A DNA stretch of 64,000 bases from Marsupella aquatica (GCA_973895155.1 OZ316898.1:11865187-11929186), one strand, 5' to 3'; shown: positions 13,637-41,507, counted from the stretch's first letter. Notes: generated from the letters alone by a model not told the origin. Program-made: numbers and translations.

Positions 13637-16600
13637 TCATCTTGCCCCAGCTAAGGATGCCCTTGCTTCTTTCACAGCCGTCACTCTCCTTCGCTTCAGC
13701 TGTCAGAACGCAATCAGTCAAATACAAAAACGCATGTAAATTCTAAAAGCTACGCGTCAGGTGTTATAATCGATTAATTTTTCTTCAACAAGCAAAAGTG
13801 TAAGCCTCAAAAGACCAAGCTCTAGCAACAAATTCAACAACAGCATGCATTCGGGGCAACCTAAGCGCCATAGGTAACCACAGACCTTTTCAGCATCGAA
13901 AAGATCTTCAGCCACCTTTTCAGCTTCCTTGCGTTTTTCCTCCCGCGTTACATAGTCTCCCATTTCTTGCCTATAAGAAGACTCCCTGCGCGTTCAGGCT
14001 CACCAAATTTCAAGAGACAACGAAAGAAGCTTCGACAAAAATCTACCATTTGGGTGATCATGTGGCACGCGGTCTACATCCTTATATGTTCCCTAGTGCA
14101 GAAGTTGCAAAAAGGGGGGAAAAAAGAAAACTACTTTCACTGCCTTGGTTTGACAGTCCAACTTGAGATCTACTCAAGCATAGACTACGAGCTATTTCTA
14201 TCTAGAAAGTTTCCACAAATTAGAGAATGCGCGAAGTAAAACTGCTGGATCACAATATGCTGCAAACCTGTAAGGTTCTTTCGCAAATGGCACCAAAGCG
14301 CTGAAGCTGTTCCCAGATGTGGTATGCGCCTGTCAAAGAGGTACTGGTTACTGCATGGACCACACATGAGACAAATCCAAGAGTAGCGATGGCTAAAGGA
14401 CAGCCATTTTCAATAATGACACCATAATTCAGGCCGTAGATTTAGTCTCTTATAGCTCTTCTCTGTCACCAATTCCTTATCACAGAGCCCACTTAGCATC
14501 TACGTCTGCCTAGACACCATGAAGAACTACAAAATCCGGAACTGGTCCATACTCCCCTACATTGACGTGCCATGGGAAAACTAACTCAAGAATTGCATAG
14601 AAGATCAATAAATGATTCAACAGTTTTTACAATCCCAGAAAATCCTCTGTTAGTATTATCACATGAAACCTTTTTGAATCGCTTGAAGTTTGGAACTGCT
14701 TCATTCCAAGCTGCTGCCGTTGATCCATTCCGATCCCTCCGGACTATCAATCCACTGCTGAAGATGATCTCCGCCCTAACTTCATCGCTAATTCCTGAAG
14801 GTACTTCAGTTTTTGGAAGTGCCATTGGCGGACGTTCAACACCTGCAACCTTGACTGGCTCCTTGCTTGAGGTCTCAACAGCTGCTCCTGACCTCAAAAG
14901 GTCCCTATTGGACGGATCCACCAGGGCTGCATTTCTAATGATCGTTTTCTCAGTATCTTTGCTGTTTAATCGTGGTGATTGCCACACAGATGAGGTTTTC
15001 AAAACTGCATTAAGTTGGTCTAAAGTTGCAGGCTCCTTCATCTTATCCACAAATGTCCGAGGAGGCAGCACTGATTTTAATTCCGTAGCCTGAAAATTGG
15101 AACACACATCTCATATTTCATTGTAGTAATTGTCCAGATATAAAACTAAAAAATAGCTCAAAAGGGTTCATACCAGCAGCAGCTCTTGCAATCCTCCATT
15201 GAAAAGCTGTAGCGTTCATGATGGTCTAGGATAGTTACACTGGTAATAGGTACAGACTGTAGCGGGGACTATTTCCAAGCCTCTAGCCAGGAGTGCATAA
15301 TATTTTCACATACTTTCAAACTCAATACTTCCAAAACAAGCTACCAAAGTCTTCCTTGCATGTTATTTGACCTGATTTCTTGCTTGAGGAAGTGAGGAGG
15401 CAGAGTCGTCCTCATTGTCCAGACCCTCCTCATCTACAGTCTCATCAGTGTCTGCACTTGCAGCTGCCACAAAGCCAATCATTATTAGAAATGCCAATGA
15501 ACTCAAATCCAAAGAGAAGTTACAATACCTGATCATTCCATCACCTAAACTGTTTAAACCAGTACGACGATCGACCCAGATCATGGCACCTTTGGATGTC
15601 ATACCTGGGGCGAGACTAACCAAAGACAGCTCCAATTTTGCACTTAATATGCTTTTCAGTAGATAGTCCTCGCTTGTCGGATTCAAATGCTTAACCGCAG
15701 TCAACACCTTTCTTCCGAACCATTGTTTGGAGGCTTGCTCTGCTGAAAAAACCAGCACGGCATTCTGTTGCACCGAACCTGCAATATCCTGAGGAAGAAA
15801 AATCTCTTGCAGATATCACAGTGCAAAATAGACATTATCTCCGGCATACAAAGCTGAGCCCAGTGTTATACATTATTGAAGGAGGGACCTGCCTTAAGAT
15901 TATCTTGCGTGAAGAACTTTACCACTCCTCCGGCAACATTTACAAGAGATGGAAGATCGCGATTGCAATACTGCATCCAATGCCAGAAGTGACATGAGTT
16001 CGAGATACCCATCATGATAATTATGATACTGTAAGGCAACTGTTGTCCACGTCTAATATTCAGGATTCAAATTGTTGAGGAATGACAGCTTCAACACACT
16101 TTGATGGACACTTGATAGTATTTGACAAGGTTTCGGATCAAGAATTTTGCATTCAGTGCACAAACGCACAAAATAATTCACCAGGTCAGTAAAATTTCCT
16201 CCATACTCACAAGATATTCTTTTTGCAAGAAGACTGTAAAACCTGCCAAGGTCTCTTTCCGTGCAAGTGGCTCAGCAATTGGGGTGAGCAAACCAAGCCC
16301 CCCACTATCCATTTTCAGCGTTGGGATGTATCTGCAAGTAAGAAAGATCTTTCGGTTGTTATTAGCGGGGAAATTAAGTAAACGATAATCTCGAAAGTGT
16401 GTAGTCCCACACGTACAGTATCGTGCTGACGACATGACGATGTAAATCACCTGTCTGTCGGCACCCTACTATAATAATAATAAGTTGGTTTGATCGCATG
16501 TTCGGAAAGGTCTAAATAGACATGCATAACCACTTATTATACATATAACAGTGAATATTTCTAGAGCGTCAAAATAAAAACAACGCAGAGTATAACCCCT

Positions 16601-18867
16601 AATTTCCAGCCAAAATTCACACAATTCCCAGATTTGCGCCTTCTAAATTATTTGACGAGTTCAAATGACAAAAAAAAACAAGAACTGCTGTGTTACACTG
16701 CATATAACCAAAGAGGTTATAATTTTCTGGATTCACAACAAACTACCCCGCTACATCTGTGATCCGTTGAAGCATCTCAACTTCCCTCGTTACACTATAA
16801 TTGCTCAGAAGAGTACTAGCATTCTATGTAGATGCCACAGTACACATCCATCACCTAGACAAACTTGGTAGCTGATCTCTCGGGGACGTTTGTGACATCA
16901 AATCCTGGTCAAGGCAAGAATCGGGTTAGGAGAGAAAAACGAACAACACCTCTAGCAGTCAAGGTTTCAAATGCATGCATCCACAACGTATAAATTACAG
17001 TCTAATCGCTCTACTTTGCACATTTTCATTGCTTTTAAGATTGTTCTCTGCTGAGCACAGTGCAAACAAAATGCGTGAAAGACTTGTGGAATCAGACACT
17101 GCGTACCATATCCACTTGAGGGCCATTTGATTTCAAATTCCACTAATAGAGTCTTCAATAGCTGATCCCAATGTACCTTCAGGTTTAAGGTGGGAGAACA
17201 CAGACAACGAGACTGACCTGAAGCCATTCCAGAAGTAGCACAGGCTTTCTGCTGAGTACAGCAGCTGTGACAAGGTCTGTGACTGATGAAGCTTCCTCCA
17301 GAAGAAGATGCGTACAATGACTGTTCCATTTCTCAAACACATAACTACCTGTACCGCCAAAGACATCAGTTATGAGTAGGCTGCACAAAACCAACTTTGA
17401 CTAGCCTTGTGCCACTGCACGCGATAATAACAAAGAGCATCCAAGACTGGCTCCAGTGATCACATGATTACTACATATGATGTACAAGACCTAGCAACAA
17501 ACTTTTAAACTAGTTTTCCAGACGTCTTGATGGTTCGCTCTTCATATAGAACAGTCACGCAGGGGAGAACAGTTCACGGGAACACTCTATATTTCTTGTC
17601 GATGCCACAGACGTAAACGCTAATAGTTCTTAATTCATAGCAGAAACTCACCTACAGCTTCGGCTTTCAATCTAAGTTCGGTGGTCCTTGAGAAGGTTGA
17701 AGGAGGCATACAAAGTACGATTGGAGCGTACTGCAGTCTGCAATTTTCCAATGACGTATATTTACGCGTACAAATAAAATGAACAGTCACATGGGAATCT
17801 AGACAACTTCACGCTTGAGGGCTCAACAATTGCCATACGGAATTCAGACAAAATATACGAAACGAGATTGACACACTTGTGAGAACTTGATGCGATCCAC
17901 TTGAAATTCAATCAGAAATGTGTTGCATATTTTGAAGATTTTGACTTAGGAGAAGACTTTTGACAGGCAGGATGGTTCAGTGACCTGAAAACTCCTTGAT
18001 TGGTTCCAAACGTGATGACATCTCCTTCTTTCAAGATAGCTTCCTTATCTGGGAACGTATTTAGGGGCCTTGAGTCGGTGTCCTTGTTCACAAAGGTGCC
18101 AAACTTTGAAAGGTCCTTCAGGACAATTGAACATCTGGGTAAAGTTTTATGGTCCTTCTCGGCAGGCGGAAGCGGAGGAGCAGCCTCCACAGAAATCTCT
18201 GCATGAAGCCTTGAGATTGATTTGTCTGTTTGGATCGTTATCGTACAGTCTGTCACATTCACAACAGCACAAACATCAACGATTTTCTGACAATTGTAAC
18301 CCACTCAACTTATCAAATTATTGGTAACTAAAAACCTGAGGAAACCTATTCAAATTCGCTGGGTATGAGTCTGTGATCACGGAAAACCACGCTTAGGTCT
18401 CCGTCACTGTACTGCAAGCAGAGGATTGATCATCCTAAGACGGTACTTCTAATTCACGTGAACACGTTCAGGGATTCGTTGTGTGAGATCTAGAAAGGGC
18501 ATTTCTTACTTTGAGTAAATCTGCGTACCTTTTCGACCCACAGAAGATGTACCCGGTGCCGTGAAGTAGAAAGGACCTGCCAAAATCCCCAAATCCGGCG
18601 AGCAAAATGAGACCCTGAAGAATAGCTTAAGTTTTCAATGCTACGAGTTTCGAAGCCCATTTATCAAGAATTGACGATTACATTGTAATGCTATGGAAAT
18701 CTAATGTAAAGGGTCGAGCTGAAGGGGACCAGAGCTCGCGAAACCATGCTTAGCCACTAGAACTCTCGAAGCAAAACAGCAAAGGGGCACTTCTACAGCA
18801 ATCCAAAGTGACGGTACTGTACGATACCAGGACCAGACGAATCTGCAGCTTCCAGCAACCACACCAT
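13637..18867 (-). CDS. NBS1: Nibrin / Nijmegen breakage syndrome 1 protein (MRN complex), multi-exon
   Basis: Spliced N-terminus MVWLLEAADSSGPGPFYFTAPGTSSVGRKDCTITIQTDKSISRLHAEI...DLSKFGTFVN is an FHA domain (exons 18828-18867, 18529-18576, 17985-18249). BRCT-like exons follow (CTHLL), then the Mre11-binding motif VPNFKRFKK, SGNSFSALVPFAKEPY, and the C-terminal AEDLFDAEK. The last exon 13637-13699 reads LKRRRVTAVKEARASLAGAR*. GT-AG junctions are in phase where checked. Confidence 0.95.
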
Positions 18868-21562
18868 TGCTACACGCTGATCGTATGCTGCATCAATAAA
18901 CCTCGATGGTGGCCGAGCATTCCTTCCCAGCTCATGCAACACTCCAGATTCCAAAGACTACCTGTCACACATAATGTTCTGTGAACAGCCAGTCCACAAG
19001 TGATGAATTCAGTCCACAAGTGATGAATTCAAATTTTCTCCGCTAAATTCATATGCAAAATAGAGAGAACCTGTATGACTGTCTATTCGCCAGCTTCAAA
19101 TTGAGCTCCCTATGAGCCGAGGAGAATTTTCAATTCGACAAGGCACGATTGGGTTTATTGCCTTTGTGGTACCTTTTCAGTGTTGGCGTACCATCTCATG
19201 TTGGCCGATGTGGAGAGAATAAACAGCTTGTTTCTCACCCCTTGGAACCAGAATTTAAGTCCTTAAATCAAATCCAAGGGGATGACACCTCAAATACTTG
19301 AAGTGACGACGTTGCAAAAAGAGTTTTGACATTATTGGGCAAGAGCAAAGAGGAGCTCTCTAAAGAACAAAACTGTGAATGCAGAGTCTCTAAAGGTGTT
19401 TCTAATATGCAATTACAACAAGAACACAAAAATGTAAACCAGGGCTCCCTACCTGCAGGCTACAGTTTGCCATAATTAGTGTTACTCAGTAATAGCGTGA
19501 ATAACCACAGTAACTAAGCTTAATTGTAATGGTTTAGTTAAGCTCTCTTGATACAATGTACTCTTTGATTTAATCTCATTGTCCAGGAATCAAGTTTTCC
19601 ATAACATTTTCAAGTCACATATGCCACACTTAATTAGTGTGATACAACTGACAATAACATTCGTGGTTTCATACACCTTTTTTTATATCATCTGACCCAA
19701 CACAAATTATGTGATCCAATTCAGCAGTTAGTGTTACCAACAACACCAATTGAATCACTTGTAATGACTGTTGATACAGATTAGTCTTAGTAAGACTCTT
19801 TCTTGTGGAATTCAAATTTCTGTGAGCTACAGAATTAGTGTTACCTGCACTAACTACAGTAAACAGTGGAGTTGCTCAGCTTGCTGAAAAAGTTGGCAAC
19901 AAGAGAACTTGCTTTACACCACACACTAATGCAAGCGTCATTTGGTTTGAGTAAAAATTGCACTCAGAGATGAATGGAAGGAAAGGAATTTTGAACTACT
20001 TAATTTGTTAGGTCAAGCCCTCTTGCAAGGTTATTGTTCAAGATATAGTCACTTGCTTGCCCTCCATACTCTATTTTTGCCCTGTACATGAGACCATCTC
20101 CAACTATAATAAGGGATCCCACATTTTTTTGTCCTTCGTCCCAATATAAAAAAGTTCCTGGGCGGGAAAGATTTACAACCATTGGATTCGATTAGCTGTT
20201 TTCCCTGATCATTGATGGTGAAGAAATGTGCACCCCTGACACATATGTGTTTCATAAATGCCCTGACCGGACTCTCTATGCGCCGGCCCTCCTTGCACAG
20301 TGCAACACACTGGCATAGGGCTGGTTCTTTCATAACATTTATACATTACTGTGAGTATTCATTGATTTTAGTGTTACATTTCATAATTGGTGTTATTTAG
20401 CTCCAAAACTTCTTCTCTACTCACATAACATTGTTATTCACATTATTTACCCAGTATCACTAATTATGGCAAACGGTGTAGCCTGCAGGTAGGGGAGTCC
20501 TGGTTTACATTTTTGTGTTCTTGTTGTAATTGCATAGAAACACCTTTAGAGACTGCATTCACATTTTTTTCACATTTTTGTTCTTTAGAGAGCTCTCTTT
20601 GCTCTTGCACGATAACATCAAAACTCTTTTTGCAACGTCGTCACTTCAGGTATTTGAAGTGTCATCCCCTTGGATTTGATATGAGGACGTCATCCCCTTG
20701 GCTATGATTTAAGGACTTCAATTCTGGTTCGAAGTGCGACACAAGCTGCATATTCTCTCCACATTGGCAAACAGAGGAAGGGACACCAACAGTGAAAGAG
20801 GTACCACCTCAGTAAACCCATTCGTGCCTTGTCGAATTGAAAATTCTCCTCGGCTCATAGGTAGCTCACTTTGAAGCTGGCGAAGAGACAGTCATACAGG
20901 TTCTCTCTATTTTGCATATGAATTTAGCGGAGAAAGTTTGAATTCATCACTTGTGGACTGGCTGTCAACAGAACATTATGTGTGACAGGTAGTCTTTGGA
21001 ATCTGGAGTGTTGCATGAGCTGGCGAGGAATGCTCGGCCACCATCGAGGTTTATTGATGCAGCATACGATCAGCGTGTAGCAATGGTGTGGTTGCTGGAA
21101 GCTGCAGATTCGTCTGGTCCTGGTATCGTACAGTACCGTCACTTTGGATTGCTGTAGAAGTCCCCCTTTGCTGTTTTGCTTCGAGAGATCCAGTGGCCAA
21201 GTATGGTTTCGCGAGCTCCGCTCCCGTTCTACTCGACATTTCACATGGGATTTCCATAACATTGCAGTGTAATTGTCAATTCTTGATAAATGGGCTTCGA
21301 AACTCGTGGATTGAAAACTTAAGCTGTTCTTCGGGTTCTCATTATATTGCTCGCCGGATTTGGGGATTTTGGCAGGTCCTTCTACTTCACGGCACCGGGT
21401 ACATATTCTGTGGGTCGAAAAGGTAAAGCAGATTTACTCAAAGTAACAAATGCCCTTTCTAGATCTCACACAACGAATTCTTGAAATTGTTTACGTCGAT
21501 TAGAATTGCCGTCTTCCGGATGATCAATCCAGTGTTTTGCAGTACAGTGATGGAGACCTAAG
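18392..21562. repeat. Long inverted duplication: arms ~18392-19505 and ~20433-21562, spacer ~930 bp
   Basis: Continuous reverse-complement similarity, e.g. 18841-18920 vs 21030-21110, with arm-specific small tandem duplications at 18991-19030 and 20661-20716. Confidence 0.95.
21083..21422 (+). pseudogene. NBS1: Partial NBS1 duplicate (exons 1-2 only, 1-bp deletion in exon 2)
   Basis: ATG at 21083, exon 1 21083-21122 identical in coding sense, exon 2 21376-21422 is 47 nt vs 48 nt (gtccttctac vs gtcctttctac). Splice sites are retained and homology ends at 21562 within intron 2. Confidence 0.85.
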
Positions 21563-21654
21563 AAGACCCAGCGAAGTGCTTTCGCCATTGGTGTCTACAC
21601 TCTCTGAAGGCAAACTGGTGTCCGAGTCGGGTAGAAGAAAAGGGGAGATGCCCC

Positions 21655-24600
21655 ATGGCGACTACTACTCTGGGCTCTGCACCGGACCCAGTGGCTGTAT
21701 TACGTGCCCACCGCTCTGCCGTTACTGCTATTTCCTTTCACCCAGCTAGTGGCTGTCTGCTTTCAGGGTTGGTGGAACTCTCTGTTCGGTCTTGTTCGTT
21801 TTGGTTGATTTAGTCAGTCTATTACCAAACTGTTGACTATGGGCAAATAAAAATATATACTGACTGTGGAATTTACTCTATGTCTTGCTGAATCTCTCAG
21901 AAACCTTGCACTCGATATTCAGTAGAGATTTTCAGTCAAGGGTGAAAATGGAATCAAATAGGTTTGGAAGGATGGCTTGCGTCCGCTCTTGCATCCAGGA
22001 CATACCTCACCTAGCTTGGAAATGCTGGCTGTTGTGGAAAAAGAGCTTTTTCATCTGCCCGGCTCTCATCGCAGAAATTGGTGGTGTTGTGTTGCATAGG
22101 GATTCTGATGGTGAATTGAAAATCTGGGATGTGGTCCGCCGTAGGCCGCATTCCTCAGCCAGGTAAAGAAACAGATTATGCATGTCACTTTGTGATCTGA
22201 GGCGTTTGTACCGAACGACTTTAGATACATTCTCAACAAAGACTGTTGATCTGCAGAGTTCATCCTCCATCTTCCGGAGTAATCGGTATTGGCACCAGCA
22301 GTTATTTGGGAAGCAAGATCTTAAGGTAATCAGACTTGATGAGCCATTTCACCCTCGTGAATACCTACTTTTAAAAAGAGCTGTGTGCCAGCATAAGGTG
22401 ACATCTGGAGGTTTTATGGAATTCATGTGATGACGGCATGAATTTGACTCTTTGCTGAAATTTGCATCTCCAGTGAATCACTGATGAAGGGTCTGACGTA
22501 TTGTGTCATGTGTGTCTAGAGTCTGGACTAATCCCAATGTAGTCTAGAGGGCCAACGTAAAGAAGGCCTGGGTGTATTTCACTTCTGAATCGGAGCTTCA
22601 TTGAATGTACATATTTCAGCCAAGGTCGCGATGGGACAGTGAAGTGTTGGCAGCTTACGGATGGAGGCCTATCAAGGTGCCGTATACGTCCATATTATAG
22701 ATAAGAAATGTTGTTGTTGTGACGGTGATAGCCGAGGTTGTTCGGTGGCAATTGATGAGCTCTTGAATTGGTATTTTTTCAAACATGCCCTGGAGAACCG
22801 CAGTACAACCTAGCTTTTTGATAAATTGTGCTTCCTGGATATGTCTTTCACACTGATTTTGGTATTTTATTCTGAGAGCACTGGATTCTTGACAGACAGC
22901 CATTGCTCTCTATTAAAACGGAGTCCTACCACTTTTGCAAGTTGTCTGTACCAAAGATCAGACAAGAAAATACATCTCTCGACGCAGGTAGGCATGTGTC
23001 TCACTTGTATTACTGGTCTCTTGTCTATTTCTGATTCAATTGAGAATATCCGCCTTGACTGAAGAAACAGGCATGGTACCAATCTCTTGCATTTGTCCTG
23101 GTGTTAAAGGTTGGGCGTCTAACTCCCTTAACTCCAATTCATTTTGGAACGAATCGCAGGCAATGAGGCACCGGTTGGCTGTGGCGGGGGAAAAGGAGCT
23201 CTTATAGTGGTTGCGGGAGAGGACCCATCCATGGTATCTAATTTACCATACTCAAAGATGTGGTCATGCTTGTAGCTGACATGGGAATTTGCTGTTGACA
23301 AAGGGATTGAATTTAGGTCGGTCCATTTGATGCAAAGACTTCTTTTCAGTTTCGGGAGAAGGAATTGCAGATGAACTACTTCAAAAGCTGCTACTGTTCT
23401 TGACGTGAGCCAACTTGACCTATGCCGCAAAATGCTTGGATCAGGTTGATGTTTGGGATATGGATGCTGGTAAGAGAGTGCAGCAGCTCCAGCAACTCAG
23501 AAGTGAAGATAACCATAACTGGAACCAATCCGAATCAGCTGCTAAGAGTGCAGGTTCTATCTTATCCTTGTGCTACTGTCATGTTGTCCGTGCTTTTTAA
23601 TGGGCTGCTTTGACATTATTTCATGTTGACGACTGCAGGCATGTGTATGACAATACAAGCTTTCCAGGCTGAAGTTGGCAGCTCCCTGACCGTTTTTTCT
23701 GGGTATGTTTAAAGCATTTCGTCTTGTCTTTGGAAGGGACGCCCCCTTCCCCCCCTCCTGTTTCATGATCAATGTACGTCTATGACCCTACTTGCGATGC
23801 TATATGGGTAGTTTGGAGAGCCCCTAAATTTTCCCCTGGATTTTGACGGTGAAAGGAATTGTTTGGATTTGGGCTGGTTTGCATTGGAAAATATAACCCA
23901 CATGTTCGTCTTCTCAAGAAGGATTCTTAAGAACGTTTCAGCGATATTCTTGCAATGGAAGCGAAGAAATACTGCTGTGTGGGTGTGTCCTTCATGTGAT
24001 TGACGTATTGGTTGGATACTGTGTCAATGCTACAGAGATTCGCTGATATTCAAGTTAGTTACATCCATGTCTTCATGTGGTCAACAGGTATGAAGATGGA
24101 AGTATGGCTGTCTGGGACCTCCGCAATCCAAAAGTGCCTCAAATTAGGAGCAAATTTCATTCTGAGCCAGGTTTGACAATTCGCCGATGCATTCTTCGTT
24201 CAATATTTTTCAGTTACTGCTACTTGTTCCAAACAGATTGGAATCAAAATTCGATCTTGAGGGTCAGAAACCCGATTTCCTTTCCTGGACAATTTTCATG
24301 ATAGGTTTCTGTCCTCACTCTACTGGCAATGTAGCTCGTGCATGTTGGGCAGTTCAACTTTAAGGATGCAATGTTCTTTATCCCCCACCCAGCTTGTTTA
24401 CTAAGGGCAAGACTGTTTAAAGTAAGCTTCAGCCACACTAGACTAACAGAAAGCAATGTTATTTGTGCACTTGAGATCTTAAGAAGACGAGAACATCAAG
24501 TTTTGGACTAATCTTTACTGACTATCTCCTTGTCTCTGTAGTTCTTAGCATTGGTATGGCTTCTTCGCTCAAAGGTGGAGTCTCTGGGGCAGCTGACGAT

Positions 24601-25965
24601 AAACTGCTATTCTTCTCTGTAAATTACGATGAGGTAAAGACATGAACAGAGCTGTGAAATTTTCTGGGTTTTGCTAAGTACATCCTCGTAGGTGTTAACA
24701 CAAAATGGTGACAACTCGAAGCCATCTAATGTGAACAATGTTTAATATTTTTGAATCTTCTGATTGCTTCTCATACAGAGCACACAATATGTGCGAAAGG
24801 AAATAGTGCTGCCGAAAGCCGGTATTGCAGACATTGCTGTACGAGCGGATGACAAGATCTGTGCAACTGCTGGTTGGGATAATAGGTTTGTGATGTGATT
24901 TGATTTTCTTGATCGAAATCTATGTTTGTGGAGACCATCAATTTGAGGTTACTAGAATATGTCTTCAAAATATCCCTTTGCAGGTCCCTCTGCTTTTCAA
25001 ATCCACTGTAGCAATTATATCAATATCCACTAGCTTCCAATAAGGTGCACCAGTGCCTACTAGGAGGGATCTTTGATGGATGGCTCGAGCTTGGGCTTGC
25101 TGGAATGACACTGAGATCCGTTGACAGTAGGTCATTGAAATGGATAATGGTGCTCCTGATGAACCAACCCGGGCATGACTGTACCAAGCTACTCGCCAAA
25201 CTAGCTTATCTTACTGATGGTAAAGCTTCCCAAAAGTCTGGATATTTGGGAGGCTTCACCATTAGTTTGATGAGCTATTTCATCAGATAAAGGGCAGCAG
25301 CTACATATGCCAGCTTAAAGTCGAGTGAAAAGTCCAACCCGCGAACAACTCCCTTGCTCCTTTACCATTTCGAGTTAACTTTCTTTCTAGTTGTGTGATT
25401 GCAACTGATGCAGACCTGAATCCTGGATATATTCTTTTTATTACATTTGATTCAGCAGTATCCGATATTATCGCTGTTAAATTAATTGTGGCAGTCATGG
25501 CAACCCCTTGCCCTACATTGTTCTATTGCCTCAAGTTTGCATTTGTAGGACTGGCAGACGGCTGTCATTCAACTCTGGACTTGTGGGCGTGTGAAGGGTT
25601 CGAATCTATGACTATAATCGGAAGCGGCCACTTGCCATACTGAAGTACCACGCGGCTGGGGTATGATCCCTGTTCAAGCAGCAATTGCAAATAGAGGACT
25701 TCTCGTGAAATGTTTTATTTTGATTTCGATTGGAAGGGAATAGGCCTGTGTGATGCGGTGCTTTGCAACATTGGGATCTTTGATGCTGCTGAAGCGATTG
25801 AACTCCTTTCAGTACTTTCTTGTTGCCATGCTCGTTTTCTCAATGAAGATTGTTTGACTGGAACAGGTGACAGGTGTGGTATTTTCAGAAGACCAAAAAC
25901 TACTTGCGTCCTCATCCAATGATGCAACGGTTGCTTTATGGTCACTCTATCCTCCAACAACTTAG
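21655..25965 (+). CDS. DSE1: WD40 protein DECREASED SIZE EXCLUSION LIMIT 1 / TANMEI (GNB1L / yeast Asa1 orthologue), 13 exons
   Basis: Spliced peptide MATTTLGSAPDPVAVLRAHRSAVTAISFHP...DGELKIWD...SQGRDGTVKCW...ESYHFCKLS...GMCMTIQAF...GYEDGSMAVWDLRN...FHSEPVLS...ATAGWDNRVRIYDY...AILKYH...NDATVALWSLYPPTT*. Exons are approximately 21655-21767, 22100-22162, 22257-22325, 22620-22676, 22896-22987, 23160-23233, 23445-23552, 23639-23702, 24088-24170, 24542-24633, 24779-24885, 25597-25660, 25867-25965. Confidence 0.93.
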
Positions 25966-27817: not shown

Positions 27818-29074
27818 CTACCAATCCATTGTACGAACCTTTGGGAGTGTCCTCTCAACCTCCGGCTCCATTTCGGGTTCAGGCTCTGGAGGACGAAATT
27901 CAGGAGATTCTAGATCGGCCAAGTTCTTTAGATCCACCATGGAAAGGTTGTTAAGCCTCCTAACGACTAAATCCGCAGCCCCTAGCTCAAAGATGGGATG
28001 CTTCCCTGCAACGGCAACGCACTTCATGAAAGCGTCATGAGCGGCCTCCACACTGGTGTTGGAATTGCCAAACACAATACACCGCTCGGCTATGAAGTTG
28101 AGGCGCTCCGCAGCGTACATGAACATCTCGGGATCTGGTTTCCCCCTGTACACATCCTCTGAGGCAAGAATTAGGTTAAAGAACCCCTCCATGCCCACCG
28201 CTTCAATCGCCCTCTCAATATACTTTCTCGGTCTCGTAGACGCAATAGCGATCGGTACGTCGTACTTCTTAAGATTCTCGACGAACTCCCGTGATCCGGG
28301 CAACAATCTGTACATTCCACCCTGCATCTCTTCGTATAGTTCCTCTTTCCTCGCCGCCAAGCGCTTGACCTGTCTGACGTCTCGAGACCAGCAGAGAACC
28401 TCCATAATCGCTTGCTCATTCTTCATCCCCTCTGCCCGCTTAAGTATAAACGTCGGAGGTGGTCGTCTTCCCTCTTCCTCTGCCAGAGCTGTCCAACTGT
28501 TTCGCTCTAGCTCTGCATCGTCCTCTACGATGACTCCTTCCCACTCCAAAATCACCCCCAGCCACCCGCATCCCATGCGATGTTGACGAAGGAGAGGATT
28601 ATGCAACGAAATGTCGTCTGCCCTATTCTCCGGAGCTAGAGACTTAAGCTGTTTCGAGTTCGAGGCATGGTAAGAAGTCTCCAGCGACTTCATCGCCTCA
28701 TCATGGCGTGAATGTGATGTCTCCTCAGTGGCGTCCAAAGAGAACGCACGGACAGAACATTCTACCTTATATTCGTTGTTCTTGCTAAAACGGCCCAAGC
28801 GATCGTATACACCACCAACTCGACCTCGACCAGGCGATGATCCGAACTTGGATCCAAATTCACCGTTGAGCCAAGAGAGTGAGTTCTCCAAAATGACTGG
28901 TACAACGCGCTGGTGATTCGAGGAATATCTAACGCTATTCAACGGGCTAGGAGAGGCAGCAGAAACTTCTGAACTTCGAATACTCGCGGAACACGATTCC
29001 ACACCCAATGCTTTGCCTGAGGAGAGGTGAGCAATCACACCCGGCCCCAGAGCAACCAGCCGGACTGCAGCCAT
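27818..29074 (-). CDS. PYRP2: 5-amino-6-(5-phospho-D-ribitylamino)uracil phosphatase, chloroplastic (HAD family, riboflavin biosynthesis), single coding exon
   Basis: 418-aa ORF with a Ser-rich transit-peptide-like N-terminus, then LHNPLLRQHRMGCGWLGVILEWEGVIVED, EGMKNEQAIMEVLCWSRD, EDVYRGKPDPEMF and ERCIVFGNSN, as in the Arabidopsis PYRP2 family. Confidence 0.9.
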   Translation of the reverse strand: MAAVRLVALGPGVIAHLSSGKALGVESCSASIRSSEVSAASPSPLNSVRYSSNHQRVVPVILENSLSWLNGEFGSKFGSSPGRGRVGGVYDRLGRFSKNNEYKVECSVRAFSLDATEETSHSRHDEAMKSLETSYHASNSKQLKSLAPENRADDISLHNPLLRQHRMGCGWLGVILEWEGVIVEDDAELERNSWTALAEEEGRRPPPTFILKRAEGMKNEQAIMEVLCWSRDVRQVKRLAARKEELYEEMQGGMYRLLPGSREFVENLKKYDVPIAIASTRPRKYIERAIEAVGMEGFFNLILASEDVYRGKPDPEMFMYAAERLNFIAERCIVFGNSNTSVEAAHDAFMKCVAVAGKHPIFELGAADLVVRRLNNLSMVDLKNLADLESPEFRPPEPEPEMEPEVERTLPKVRTMDW

Positions 29075-39297: not shown

Positions 39298-41507
39298 ATG
39301 GCGAGCTGCACAGCAACATCGACGCTGGGGAGAATGTGTGCATCGACGCCGAGGAATGCGGCGCCGTGCACCAAGGTGTCTGCTGATGGATGCGCTCTGC
39401 AGGCAAAGAAGACTGGGGCGCAGAGACTGAGCTCGGGATTCTCGTTCTCGCAAGTCAGTTTCACCGATGCGGCACGAGCTGTTGCGTGGAAAGAAAGGTT
39501 AGTTTGCCGTTTACTGTGTAATGTCTTGTAGATGCCTCGATGTTGTTTCCTGAGTAGCAGTGCTAGCAGTGCTCTTGAATGGGTTGCCGCATTGTGTGCC
39601 CTTCGGTGTAGCAATTGCCCCAAGTCTGCCCCTCAATCAGCTCGAACAGTGGGTTGTATCGGACTATGGTCATCTCCTGTTTCGATGATACCCACGCACT
39701 TCATTACTGGCGATTGAATTCAGTTTGTTCAGAAGAGTAGCGTCTTCTCCTGTTTTAATGATATTCTTGCTCTTCATCATTGGCGATTATACTCAGAATG
39801 CTGTGTTGGGTAGCGAAGCTGACCTCTCGGGAACGTTGATGTCCTAAGTTGGTCTCAGTCGTAAGAACTCTCTACCTTAGTGCTTTAGTGGTTCAATGAC
39901 CTCTGATGCCATTCGTCATTTCGGTCCTGCATATTGTGCAGATCCCGAAATTGAGTGTCTCGGAGTTCCTGGTTTTGAGTGAAGGATGTCAAACTTGTTC
40001 CATCTTTTGAGATTGTTGGAAACCGTCCTACCGCGGAGCTATGTTTTGTCTATATCTTAGTTTTGGTTAAACCTTTGTTAAACCTTAAGTCTAGTTTCGG
40101 GAAAGTTCTCCTTTGTTGTTTCGAAAGTAGCATGGAAAGCTGAATGTGCTGAAAAGCTGCTGGTTAGTTTAGTTGATGCCAATATTTCGATATAGATTGA
40201 CGAGCGTTCGCGCTTTGTTTTCTTTGGTGTTCAGCTCCTCGGCGAGGAGAAAGAGGTGTGATGTGCTCGTGGTGCGAGCGGCTCGAGGGAAATTCGAGAG
40301 GAATAAGCCCCATGTCAACATTGGCACGATTGGGCACGTTGATCATGGCAAAACAACTCTCACTGCTGTCCTTACCATGGCACTTGCCTCGATTGGAGGA
40401 CGTGCAGGGAAGAAGTACGATGAAATTGATGCTGCACCTGAGGAGAAGGCGAGAGGAATCACCATCAATACCGCCACAGTTGAGTACGAGACGGTCAAAC
40501 GCCATTATGCCCATGTCGATTGCCCTGGACACGCAGATTATGTCAAGAACATGATTACAGGGGCTGCCCAAATGGATGGTGCTATCCTCGTGGTTTCTGG
40601 TGCTGATGGTCCCATGCCTCAGACTAAGGAGCATATTCTCCTGGCCAAGCAAGTGGGTGTCCCCAATATGGTTGTGTTCCTAAACAAGCAGGACCAGGTC
40701 GACGATGACGAACTCTTGGAGCTTGTCGACCTCGAAGTCCGGGATCTCCTCACATCTTATGAATTTCCTGGTGATGATGTCCCTATCATCTCAGGATCTG
40801 CTCTTCTCGCCCTTGAAGCCCTTATAGAGAACCCGAAACTTGCCCGAGGTGAGAACAAATGGGTCGACAAGATTTTCGACCTGATGGACAAAGTTGATAA
40901 TTACATTCCTGTACCAACAAGGCAGACTGAGTTGCCATTCTTGATGGCTGTGGAGGATGTGTTCTCAATAACTGGACGAGGAACTGTGGCCACCGGTCGT
41001 GTGGAGCGTGGCACCGTTAGAGTAGGTGAAACCGTGGAGATTGTGGGATTGAGAGAAACAAGGGGAACCACGGTGACGGGGCTCGAGATGTTCCAAAAGT
41101 TGTTGGACGAGGCTCTTGCAGGAGACAACGTAGGAATCCTTCTGAGAGGTATCACGAAAGCCGATATCCAGAGGGGGATGGTACTCTCCAAGCCTGGCAG
41201 CATCACTCCCCACAGCAAGTTTGAGGCTTCCGTTTATATTCTGAAGAAGGAGGAGGGAGGGAGACATTCTCCCTTCTTTGCTGGTTACAGACCACAATTT
41301 TACATGAGGACCACAGACGTGACTGGAGCTGTCACCTCTGTCGAGAATGACAAGGGGGAGCTGACGAAAATGGTCATGCCTGGTGACCGCGTCAAAATGA
41401 CCGTGCAGCTCATTAACGCTATTGCCTGTGAACAGAAGATGAGGTTCGCCATTCGAGAGGGAGGAAAGACTGTCGGTGCCGGTGTTATATCCAAGGTTCT
41501 TGATTGA
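39298..41507 (+). CDS. TUFA: Elongation factor Tu, chloroplastic (nuclear-encoded), 2 exons: 39298-39497 and 40235-41507
   Basis: Exon 1 encodes a Ser/Thr/Ala-rich transit peptide [12 protein letters not shown]... ending AG|gttagt. The acceptor ttcag|C restores the frame (phase 2). The mature part has [46 protein letters not shown] and [15 protein letters not shown], i.e. the plastid/cyanobacterial type. Confidence 0.96.

Follow-up and report, generated by a model that had tools for sequence, protein, structure and literature searches.

Inverted copies of the NBS1 5′ region upstream of a DSE1-like WD40 gene in the leafy liverwort Marsupella aquatica

Which regulatory DNA serves a gene when the sequence directly upstream of it is an inverted copy of the 5′ end of its neighbour? 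This question is raised by a stretch of 64,000 nucleotides from the leafy liverwort Marsupella aquatica, referred to as a whole as the window, in which the 5′ region of the DNA-repair gene NBS1 is present in two inverted arms and the second arm is directed at a DSE1-like WD40 gene (Table 1). The first-pass annotation of the window had proposed that DSE1 captured the NBS1 promoter, the two genes being driven by twin divergent promoters.

The two arms and the genes on either side

The NBS1 gene was found to be intact. Residues 14–580 of the Calypogeia fissa NBS1 protein (P0001, 581 aa) were colinear and in order with the window in a tblastn search, the stop codon was confirmed, and the C-terminal FKxFxK (MRE11-binding) motif was found as PNFKRFKK in an ORF at 14586–15107. 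The FHA domain, which is N-terminal and follows right after the start codon, was recognized by Pfam on exon 3 (E=9e-11). Exons 1–3 joined gave the in-frame translation MVWLLEAADSSGPGPFYFTAPGTSSVGRKDCTITIQ..., which aligned with the N-terminus of C. fissa NBS1, and named NBS1/nibrin relatives were among the matches of a protein search with NBS1. Orthology of the left arm to C. fissa NBS1 began at 18943 and continued toward lower coordinates. By its sequence, the left copy is the functional start of NBS1.

Table 1. Features of the NBS1–DSE1 locus in window coordinates.
Feature	Position	Strand	Basis
NBS1 (nibrin), start to stop codon, intact	13637..18867	-	tblastn of C. fissa NBS1 and Pfam FHA
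NBS1 exon 3, FHA domain core	17985..18249	-	Pfam FHA; 84% identical to C. fissa NBS1
Left arm, functional NBS1 5′ region	18392..19505	-	Repeat finding and blastn
NBS1 exon 2, 48 nt, ..GPFYFTAPGTSSVGRK, intact	18529..18576	-	Same TCCTTTCTA reading in C. fissa
136-nt identical stretch, left arm (NBS1 leader, exon 1, start of intron 1)	18789..18924	-	Longest perfect run in arm alignment
NBS1 exon 1, 40 nt, MVWLLEAADSSGP + 1 nt, donor GTATCG	18828..18867	-	Matches N-terminus of P0001
Spacer	19506..20432	.	Unique, 927 bp
Right arm, inverted NBS1 5′-region copy directed at DSE1	20433..21562	+	Repeat finding and blastn
136-nt identical stretch, right-arm partner	21026..21161	+	Same perfect run
NBS1 exon 1 copy, identical to original	21083..21122	+	ATG in strong context (GCAatgG)
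NBS1 exon 2 copy, 47 nt, pseudo-exon	21376..21422	+	1-nt deletion, TCCTTTCTA to TCCTTCTA
Only native DSE1 upstream DNA left, probable 5′ leader	21594..21654	+	Conserved with both C. fissa homeologs
WD40 gene (DSE1-like), ~12 short exons	21655..25965	+	Exon peptides compared with C. fissa 365-aa WD40 gene

The exon peptides of the WD40 gene showed 82–97% amino acid identity to a C. fissa WD40 gene, and the gene as a whole showed ~72% nucleotide identity. The annotation gives this orthologue 365 aa and no families other than WD40; DSE1, GNB1L and ASA1 are small all-WD40 proteins of about 330–440 aa. Exon 1 in the window gave a weak WD40 match (E=1.7e-4, below the Pfam cut-off), and exon-wise PDB searches, with exons all ~50 aa or shorter, returned generic WD40 proteins only. 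We take the gene to be a putative DSE1 from its N-terminal PDPVAVLR.H motif.

The ~1.1-kb inverted arms of the first-pass annotation were recovered at the same coordinates to the base by both repeat finding and blastn, and no third copy of the arm sequence was detected by blastn elsewhere in the 64-kb window. A global alignment of the arms comprised 1165 columns with 1002 matches, 77 mismatches and 86 gap columns, corresponding to 92.9% identity over aligned bases and 86% with gaps counted. As had been described, each arm contains ~640 bp upstream of the NBS1 ATG together with exons 1 and 2, the exons being located inside both arms. The left arm consists of 638 bp of upstream sequence, the first two exons with intron 1 between them, and 137 nt of intron 2. 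The original NBS1 ATG (18867, minus strand) lies 638 bp and the copied one (21083, plus strand) 650 bp from the inner end of its arm, 2.2 kb apart from each other. The distance from the end of the right arm to the DSE1-like ATG (21655) is 93 bp, in agreement with the annotation; an extra 10-nt match (CCCAGCGAA) was found beyond a 24-nt indel at the outer end of the arm, and by sequence similarity the arm may reach ~21577, i.e., 78 bp before this ATG.

The spacer contains four copies of a 15-nt motif, CATAATTAGTGTTAC, and a short motif is repeated at the inner arm ends and within the spacer. Its ORFs showed no Pfam match and none was transposase-like; the spacer had no Rfam match and no counterpart in C. 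fissa.

In the right arm, the region 21007–21514 showed a 76–77% match to C. fissa NBS1, and the copied intron 1 has retained its splice signals. The 1-nt deletion in the copy of exon 2 shifts the frame, giving the translation ..GPSTSRHRVHILWVEK, and this arm carries a decaying pseudo-5′ end of NBS1. An in-frame NBS1::DSE1 fusion was rejected for each of the splicing routes considered. With the copied intron 1 spliced, the ORF from the ATG at 21083 stops at 21446, off the DSE1 frame; a good acceptor at 21542 leads into the frame of the 21537–21749 ORF, not that of DSE1; and an in-frame join needs an acceptor at 21561/21562, where no pyrimidine tract is present.

Comparison with relatives and divergence of the arms

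The closest genome found for comparison was that of C. fissa, in which two homeologous blocks (chr7 and chr3) correspond to the locus. The gene order HAD–DSE1–NBS1 was the same in the window and in both blocks, each of which contains HAD(+), DSE1(-), a 194-aa gene, an AP-sigma gene and NBS1(+), so with two genes between DSE1 and NBS1 and a distance between their ATGs of 9.2 kb on chr7 and ~19 kb on chr3. No inverted NBS1 copy was found in either block, and none of the C. fissa intergenic DNA was found anywhere in the window (both comparisons covered the chr3 intergenic region apart from 1,185 bp). Homology between the window and C. fissa breaks off at 18943 next to NBS1 and at 21594 next to DSE1. 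The 9–19 kb missing from the window may have been deleted in its own lineage or inserted in that of Calypogeia. NBS1 of the moss Ceratodon has an A_deamin gene, and not DSE1, as its divergent neighbour, and in the thalloid liverworts Marchantia paleacea and Riccia neither NBS1 nor DSE1 was found within 10 kb of HAD. Since the pair is 9–19 kb apart in C. fissa, NBS1 has another neighbour in Ceratodon and neither gene is beside HAD in Marchantia and Riccia, the NBS1–DSE1 pairing looks, from gene order, like lineage-specific synteny and not like a conserved regulatory unit.

The first-pass annotation had also claimed that the right arm leaves almost no room for a native DSE1 promoter, and had suggested synteny as a way to recognize a lost original promoter. 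The comparison strengthened this claim: relative to both C. fissa homeologs, only ~61 bp (perhaps 72 bp) of orthologous DNA is left upstream of the DSE1 ATG, the homology ending 20–30 bp from the end of the arm, while the ~1 kb upstream of DSE1 that the two C. fissa copies share is absent from the entire window. The retained segment starts with a pyrimidine-rich stretch and includes a conserved out-of-frame ATG at 21648. Beyond ~61 bp there is thus no recognizable native DSE1 upstream DNA, and the next 1.1 kb upstream is, by its similarity, NBS1-derived.

Outside an identical core the arms differ at ~10% of sites, and the window and C. fissa differ at ~27%; because of this difference in divergence, the copy would be younger than the split from C. 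fissa or would have been in concerted evolution since. The core, 136–220 bp around the NBS1 leader and exon 1, has been kept identical between the arms. Its 136-nt perfect part contains no arm–arm differences where 9.5 were expected (P ~8e-5), despite 22 fixed differences (16% divergence) from C. fissa, which points to a probable gene-conversion tract. Gene conversion appears to explain the identical core better than selection on a shared promoter, and selection on both copies also fits, as the core coincides with the part that would hold the start site and leader. A structured RNA in the core was rejected, the Rfam search of this segment being blank at E<=1.

Transcription of the DSE1-like gene

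The explanation favoured here, which we consider probable with some reserve, is an old, lineage-specific partial inverted duplication of the NBS1 5′ end that was joined upstream of the DSE1-like gene, with the start of DSE1 transcription likely near its own ATG. The duplicated piece would extend from the NBS1 upstream flank through the first two exons and intron 1 into intron 2, copied through a rearrangement of the fold-back or template-switch type, and the outer junction would lie ~80–93 bp upstream of the DSE1-like start codon. Since DSE1 is intact and conserved, it must presumably now be transcribed amid NBS1-derived sequence. Our guess is that transcription most likely starts near 21580–21600, close to the DSE1 ATG, using the retained conserved leader; the former NBS1 intron and exon DNA would form the surroundings of the DSE1 core promoter, and the copied NBS1 flank, 0.5–1.2 kb upstream, would be at most a distal regulatory region. 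A short native leader is preferred because a long leader would hold 8–11 upstream ATGs, while the segment 21594–21654 is conserved and has a pyrimidine-rich start. Judged from this layout, co-regulation of DSE1 with NBS1 is possible.

The promoter capture proposed in the first-pass annotation goes further: the copied NBS1 promoter itself would drive DSE1 from a start at ~21000–21030, with the pseudo-exons in the leader, and the twin promoters would co-regulate a PIKK recruiter and a PIKK assembly factor. This is considered unlikely, and we are equally doubtful that DSE1 lost its own promoter and now runs on an NBS1 copy kept identical by gene conversion and co-regulated with NBS1. Promoter capture is consistent with a right-arm copy that is directed at DSE1 with nothing else upstream of that gene, with the missing native upstream DNA, with the leader and exon-1 core being the same in both arms, with the intact splice signals of the copied intron 1 and with the documented functional link between the two proteins. 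The literature tie of NBS1 and DSE1/GNB1L/ASA1 to ATM/ATR holds, and this link is suggestive; the comparative data indicate that the gene neighbourhood would be an accident of synteny in this lineage.

However, if transcription began at the copied NBS1 start site, the leader would contain 11 upstream ATGs before and 8 after splicing of the copied intron, among them the strong-context NBS1 ATG, and no resulting frame joins DSE1 in frame. Besides, decay of the right copy is seen in the frameshift of its exon 2, and the identical core is diverged from C. fissa as in a conversion tract rather than as under deep constraint. A cis-motif scan of the arms detected no E2F, SOG1-type CTT-N7-AAG, TATA, telo box, site II or MSA motifs, and the lack of the first two in the arms argues against promoter capture. 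In the spacer, an E2F-type site was found at 20162 and a CTT-N7-AAG site at 19880, with ~0.2 of each expected by chance; these are no evidence, since such counts are at chance level. The distance between the genes in C. fissa and the other divergent neighbour of NBS1 in Ceratodon also speak against capture. Shared bidirectional promoters lie in one intergenic region, usually of <1 kb, and the 2,788 bp between the NBS1 and DSE1 ATGs in the window hold two inverted copies and a 927-bp spacer; conserved head-to-head pairing was found in none of C. fissa, Ceratodon, M. paleacea and Riccia. Among the Logan transcript contigs, NBS1 of Physcomitrium was present and none was found for the window species or C. 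fissa; the HAD protein encoded in the window had no match at 100% identity.

It is improbable, more so than promoter capture, that the inverted repeat is a source of hairpin RNA or siRNA against the NBS1 promoter and 5′ end, as a proto-small-RNA gene or a trigger of promoter methylation. The arms are inverted copies of one gene's own 5′ end with the capacity for a long hairpin, a putative transcript over the inner 1431 nt being predicted to fold as one long stem (-583 kcal/mol), and for plant MIRNA genes an origin by inverted duplication is an established model (PMC3237417, PMC1790633). However, a transcript spanning both arms is only hypothetical, strong silencing is unlikely since NBS1 and DSE1 are both intact and conserved, no Rfam match was found, and matured MIRNA precursors are all far shorter than the arms.

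Slightly less probable again is a functionless duplication, a neutral scar of rearrangement with DSE1 driven from the retained leader, the first exon or introns. The indels and the frameshift accumulating in the right copy, the about equal numbers of polarized substitutions on the two arms (19 and 26) and a motif content at chance level are in line with neutrality, but a complete promoter would hardly fit into ~61 bp of native upstream DNA and the new upstream DNA likely contributes.

An assembly artefact, or a fold-back or TIR transposon, is very improbable in spite of the palindromic layout and the short motif shared by inner arm ends and spacer: a fold-back read or assembly artefact gives near-identical arms, so that the 7% substitutions and 86 gap columns in arms separated by 927 bp of unique DNA largely refute it, and a transposon was rejected on the presence in the arms of host exons with orthologues in C. 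fissa NBS1, the lack of a clean flanking target-site duplication, the lack of another copy in the window and the lack of a transposase-like ORF.

Parallels and significance

Palindromes such as those on sex chromosomes are homogenized by arm-to-arm gene conversion. Like these, the locus has inverted arms around a unique spacer and a perfect tract over the functional part in otherwise diverged arms; unlike these, its arms are only 1.1 kb with 86–93% identity, and a working gene part is present in one arm only. Because overall arm identity is this low, conversion would be rare or local in this palindrome. Inverted duplications at rearrangement breakpoints are reportedly covered by a staggered-break model of Ranz and co-workers from 2007. 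As in replacement of a gene's 5′ end at a breakpoint, a partial 5′ copy of one gene lies just upstream of another and the ancestral upstream DNA is missing; in contrast, there is no chimeric coding sequence here, the DSE1 start codon and N-terminus are native, and promoter use is putative.

An inverted-duplication model for the birth of plant MIRNA and hairpin-RNA genes is said to go back to Allen and co-workers in 2004. The locus agrees with it in that a segment of a protein-coding gene was duplicated in inverted orientation beside itself, with long, imperfect arms capable of forming a hairpin, and differs in that promoter DNA is in the arms, intact genes flank them on both sides, and a second gene has the copy fused to its 5′ end. 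The model has been updated (PMC3237417; also PMC1790633, bioRxiv 10.1101/682591). Plant head-to-head gene pairs with a shared bidirectional promoter have likewise been described (PMC4222868, PMC11373494). The two divergent genes and the short intergenic distance (2.8 kb between ATGs) resemble such pairs, whereas the two inverted copies of one promoter region and the separation of 9–19 kb in the nearest relative do not.

The locus provides an example of probable local gene conversion acting on inverted repeats that are short and old, in a plant whose life cycle is haploid-dominant, and its structure is of the kind thought to give rise to hairpin small-RNA genes. If DSE1 runs on NBS1-derived regulatory DNA, the locus would be a clean natural case of promoter replacement by partial inverted duplication, in which an essential gene would have come through the loss of its native upstream DNA, with the donor promoter still 2 kb away for comparison.

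The NBS1 5′ end, its inverted copy and the adjoining WD40 gene

The window was identified as plant nuclear DNA, and NBS1 was found on its minus strand. Exon 3 showed 84% identity with the NBS1 protein (P0001, 581 aa) of the leafy liverwort Calypogeia fissa, a protein whose relatives include ones named NBS1/nibrin. The translation of exons 1–3 (MVWLLEAADSSGPGPFYFTAPGTSSVGRKDCTITIQ...) agreed with the C. fissa N-terminus, and the colinearity of P0001 with the window as far as the stop codon at 13637 indicates that NBS1 is intact.

Features of the window, with coordinates in nucleotides
Feature	Position	Strand	Remarks
NBS1 exon 3	17985-18249	-	FHA core, Pfam E=9e-11
NBS1 exon 2	18576-18529	-	canonical splice sites
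NBS1 exon 1	18867-18828	-	canonical splice sites
Left arm	18392-19505		
Right arm	20433-21562		
DSE1-like WD40 gene	21655-25965	+	starts MATTTLGSAPDPVAVLRAHRSAV...; ~12 short exons
HAD-family phosphatase gene	27821-29074	-	intron-less, single exon, 418 aa
EF-Tu ORF	40173-41507	+	single exon, 444 codons; organellar/bacterial type, short N-terminal extension

The arm coordinates and inverted orientation reported in the first-pass annotation were recovered exactly by a repeat finder and by blastn, with 927 bp between the arms and no third copy of the arm sequence in the 64-kb window (blastn). Aligned globally in NBS1-sense orientation, the arms had 1002 matching, 77 mismatched and 86 gapped columns (identity 92.9% over aligned bases, 86% with gaps counted), and either arm carried a small private tandem duplication (20 nt at 18990–19031; 28 nt at 20661–20720). 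The right arm extends to ~21577 if a 10-nt match beyond a 24-nt indel is counted. A fold-back read or assembly artefact was ruled out because the arms are so diverged and the spacer between them is unique. A transposon origin was likewise rejected, as the arms contain orthologous host exons and neither a target-site duplication, a transposase-like ORF nor a second copy was present in the window.

Exon mapping showed the left arm to run from 638 bp of upstream DNA through exons 1 and 2, with intron 1 between them, into intron 2 for 137 nt; the right arm contained the same NBS1 parts on the plus strand with the ATG at 21083, so that the annotated arm content (NBS1 upstream DNA plus exons 1–2) holds. 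The exon-1 copy did not differ from the original. In the exon-2 copy one T is missing (TCCTTTCTA to TCCTTCTA) and the frame is shifted as a result, and at this position C. fissa agreed with the left arm, which indicates that the right arm is a truncated pseudo-5′-end of NBS1. Three upstream ATGs in the conserved 76-nt NBS1 leader (within 18935–18870 and 21015–21080; ~9930–10000 in L001, the C. fissa NBS1-locus stretch) have kept their positions in C. fissa, and the peptides that these encode differed (21 codons in the window, ~10 in C. fissa).

Eight exon peptides of the DSE1-like WD40 gene (hereafter DSE1) were 82–97% identical to an annotated 365-aa all-WD40 C. fissa gene, compared to ~72% nucleotide identity over the whole gene, and on this basis the gene looks intact and constrained. 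Exon-by-exon PDB searches returned generic WD40 matches only, and the gene is a candidate DSE1/GNB1L/ASA1 orthologue. In published work, DSE1 has been described as the orthologue of human GNB1L and yeast ASA1, with a genetic link to ATR (PMC13544204), and ATM and ATR biogenesis has been reported to need GNB1L (bioRxiv 10.1101/2022.09.23.508845); the connection to ATM/ATR that the annotation took as established is thus backed by the literature. An out-of-frame ATG at 21648–21650, 7 nt before the DSE1 start codon, opens a 33-codon ORF overlapping this start; it is kept in both C. fissa homeologs and may represent a conserved overlapping upstream ORF. Elsewhere in the window, the EF-Tu ORF is probably a nuclear gene for plastid EF-Tu.

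Comparison with Calypogeia fissa and the absence of native DSE1 upstream DNA

The HAD phosphatase has chloroplastic 5-amino-6-(5-phospho-D-ribitylamino)uracil phosphatase among its named relatives. It had two C. fissa orthologues (88–89% identity; 59–61% for Sphagnum), and these identities put the window within or close to the Calypogeia lineage and outside the peat mosses. Via the loci of the two orthologues and the NBS1 locus, two homeologous C. fissa blocks were found that share the order and orientation of the window: HAD, DSE1 on the opposite strand, and NBS1 diverging from DSE1. The start codons of DSE1 and NBS1 are 9.2 kb (chr7) and ~19 kb (chr3) apart in C. fissa, where they are separated by a 194-aa gene and an AP-sigma gene without introns, and 2,788 bp apart in the window. 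No inverted NBS1 5′ copy was present in either block, the chr3 intergenic DNA having been covered for all but 1,185 bp.

The whole block from HAD to NBS1, including the 194-aa and AP-sigma genes, occurs twice in C. fissa (L002+L010 on chr3, L003+L009 on chr7) with 92–95% identity, in keeping with polyploidy or a segmental duplication of large size; the DSE1–NBS1 intergenic distance differs two-fold between the homeologs. The AP-sigma gene encodes a 147-aa clathrin-adaptor sigma subunit (L001 5931–6374; L009 10001–10444), is absent from the whole 64-kb window and may be a retrocopy or a mark of rearrangement. No DSE1 or NBS1 was found within 10 kb of HAD in Marchantia paleacea or Riccia sorocarpa, and the moss Ceratodon has an adenosine-deaminase gene as the divergent neighbour of NBS1. 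HAD–DSE1–NBS1 synteny was thus found in none of these three outgroups, and the intervening block could have been deleted in the window lineage or inserted in Calypogeia.

The alignment between the window and C. fissa covered exons and introns alike at 72–76% identity and then ended abruptly, at 18943 on the NBS1 side (76 bp upstream of the NBS1 ATG) and at 21594, perhaps 21583, on the DSE1 side (21594 being 61 bp upstream of the DSE1 ATG). Since the right arm ends at 21562 or ~21577, the NBS1-derived copy meets DSE1-orthologous sequence within ~6–30 bp. Upstream of DSE1, a stretch of ~1 kb is shared by the C. fissa homeologs (92% identity), and neither this nor other C. fissa intergenic sequence was found anywhere in the window. 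These results indicate that DSE1 in the window retains no upstream DNA recognisable as its own, apart from a short stretch that is probably its leader. The structural half of the annotation's argument, the lack of room for a native DSE1 promoter, is thereby strengthened, and the comparison supports and sharpens the proposal that an NBS1 5′ copy stands in place of the DSE1 upstream DNA.

Age of the arms, probable gene conversion and the spacer

With C. fissa as outgroup for the alignable part of the arms, the arms differed from each other at 9.7% of sites outside one core block, compared to 22.6% for both arms against C. fissa, which indicates that the duplication is younger than the split from the C. 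fissa lineage, or that the arms have undergone concerted evolution after it. Polarised changes were nearly equal per arm (19 versus 26). Arm divergence amounted to about one-third of between-species divergence and exceeded the ~5% between C. fissa homeologs; the inverted duplication is judged to be old.

A stretch of 136 nt reaching from the NBS1 leader through exon 1 into the beginning of intron 1 (18924–18789, corresponding to 21026–21161) showed no arm-to-arm difference, and ~220 nt showed only four. The same 136 nt had 22 fixed differences (16%) from C. fissa, which makes them just slightly better conserved between species than the sequence around them. The ratio found elsewhere predicts 9.5 arm-to-arm differences, against none observed (Poisson P ~8e-5; Fisher P=0.001). 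The simplest reading of these counts is a gene-conversion tract, which may have been kept since conversion importing mutations into the functional start of NBS1 would be disfavoured by selection. Selection may also have acted on the two copies as promoters, but it is not needed to explain the tract. The locus is a further example of known events: partial inverted duplication of a gene, replacement of a promoter region and, probably, conversion between arms.

The spacer matched no protein family and no RNA family. A 15-nt motif (CATAATTAGTGTTAC) occurs in four direct copies, the first at the inner left-arm end and the others across the spacer (19471–19485, 19629–19643, 19830–19844, 20382–20396), with a single inverted copy at the inner right-arm end (20454–20468); speculatively, it could have provided microhomology for a fold-back or template-switch event. 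Inverted duplication of a target sequence has been proposed as the precursor state of new plant small-RNA genes (PMC3237417, PMC1790633). If a spacer-crossing transcript is made, its inner 1431 nt would fold into a very long hairpin (predicted −583 kcal/mol), and the arms thus match such precursors in structure.

Transcription start of DSE1

A DSE1 leader starting from ~21007 would contain 11 upstream ATGs (eight with the copied intron 1 removed), among them the NBS1 ATG in strong context (GCAatgG), and none of their reading frames joins that of DSE1. The segment 21594–21654, in comparison, is conserved with both C. fissa copies, is pyrimidine-rich at its start and has the ATG at 21648 as its single upstream ATG. 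Indirectly, these features speak against the copied NBS1 start site being where productive DSE1 transcription mainly begins, and a start near the arm/DSE1 junction is favoured. The core promoter would then sit amid former NBS1 intron and exon DNA, with the copied NBS1 flank 0.5–1.2 kb upstream. Logan transcript contigs were found for Physcomitrium NBS1 and none for the window's species or C. fissa.

No canonical E2F, SOG1-type, TATA, telo-box, site-II or MSA motif was found in either arm. The sole canonical E2F site (TTTCCCGC, 20162–20169) and the sole CTT-N7-AAG (SOG1-type) motif (19880–19892) of the NBS1–DSE1 interval lie in the spacer, at chance frequency (~0.2 of each expected). The proposed coupling of two ATM/ATR-related genes by twin promoters is somewhat disfavoured. 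If DSE1 starts near the junction, it would still depend on NBS1-derived DNA, which would not in itself give it a promoter programme in common with NBS1.
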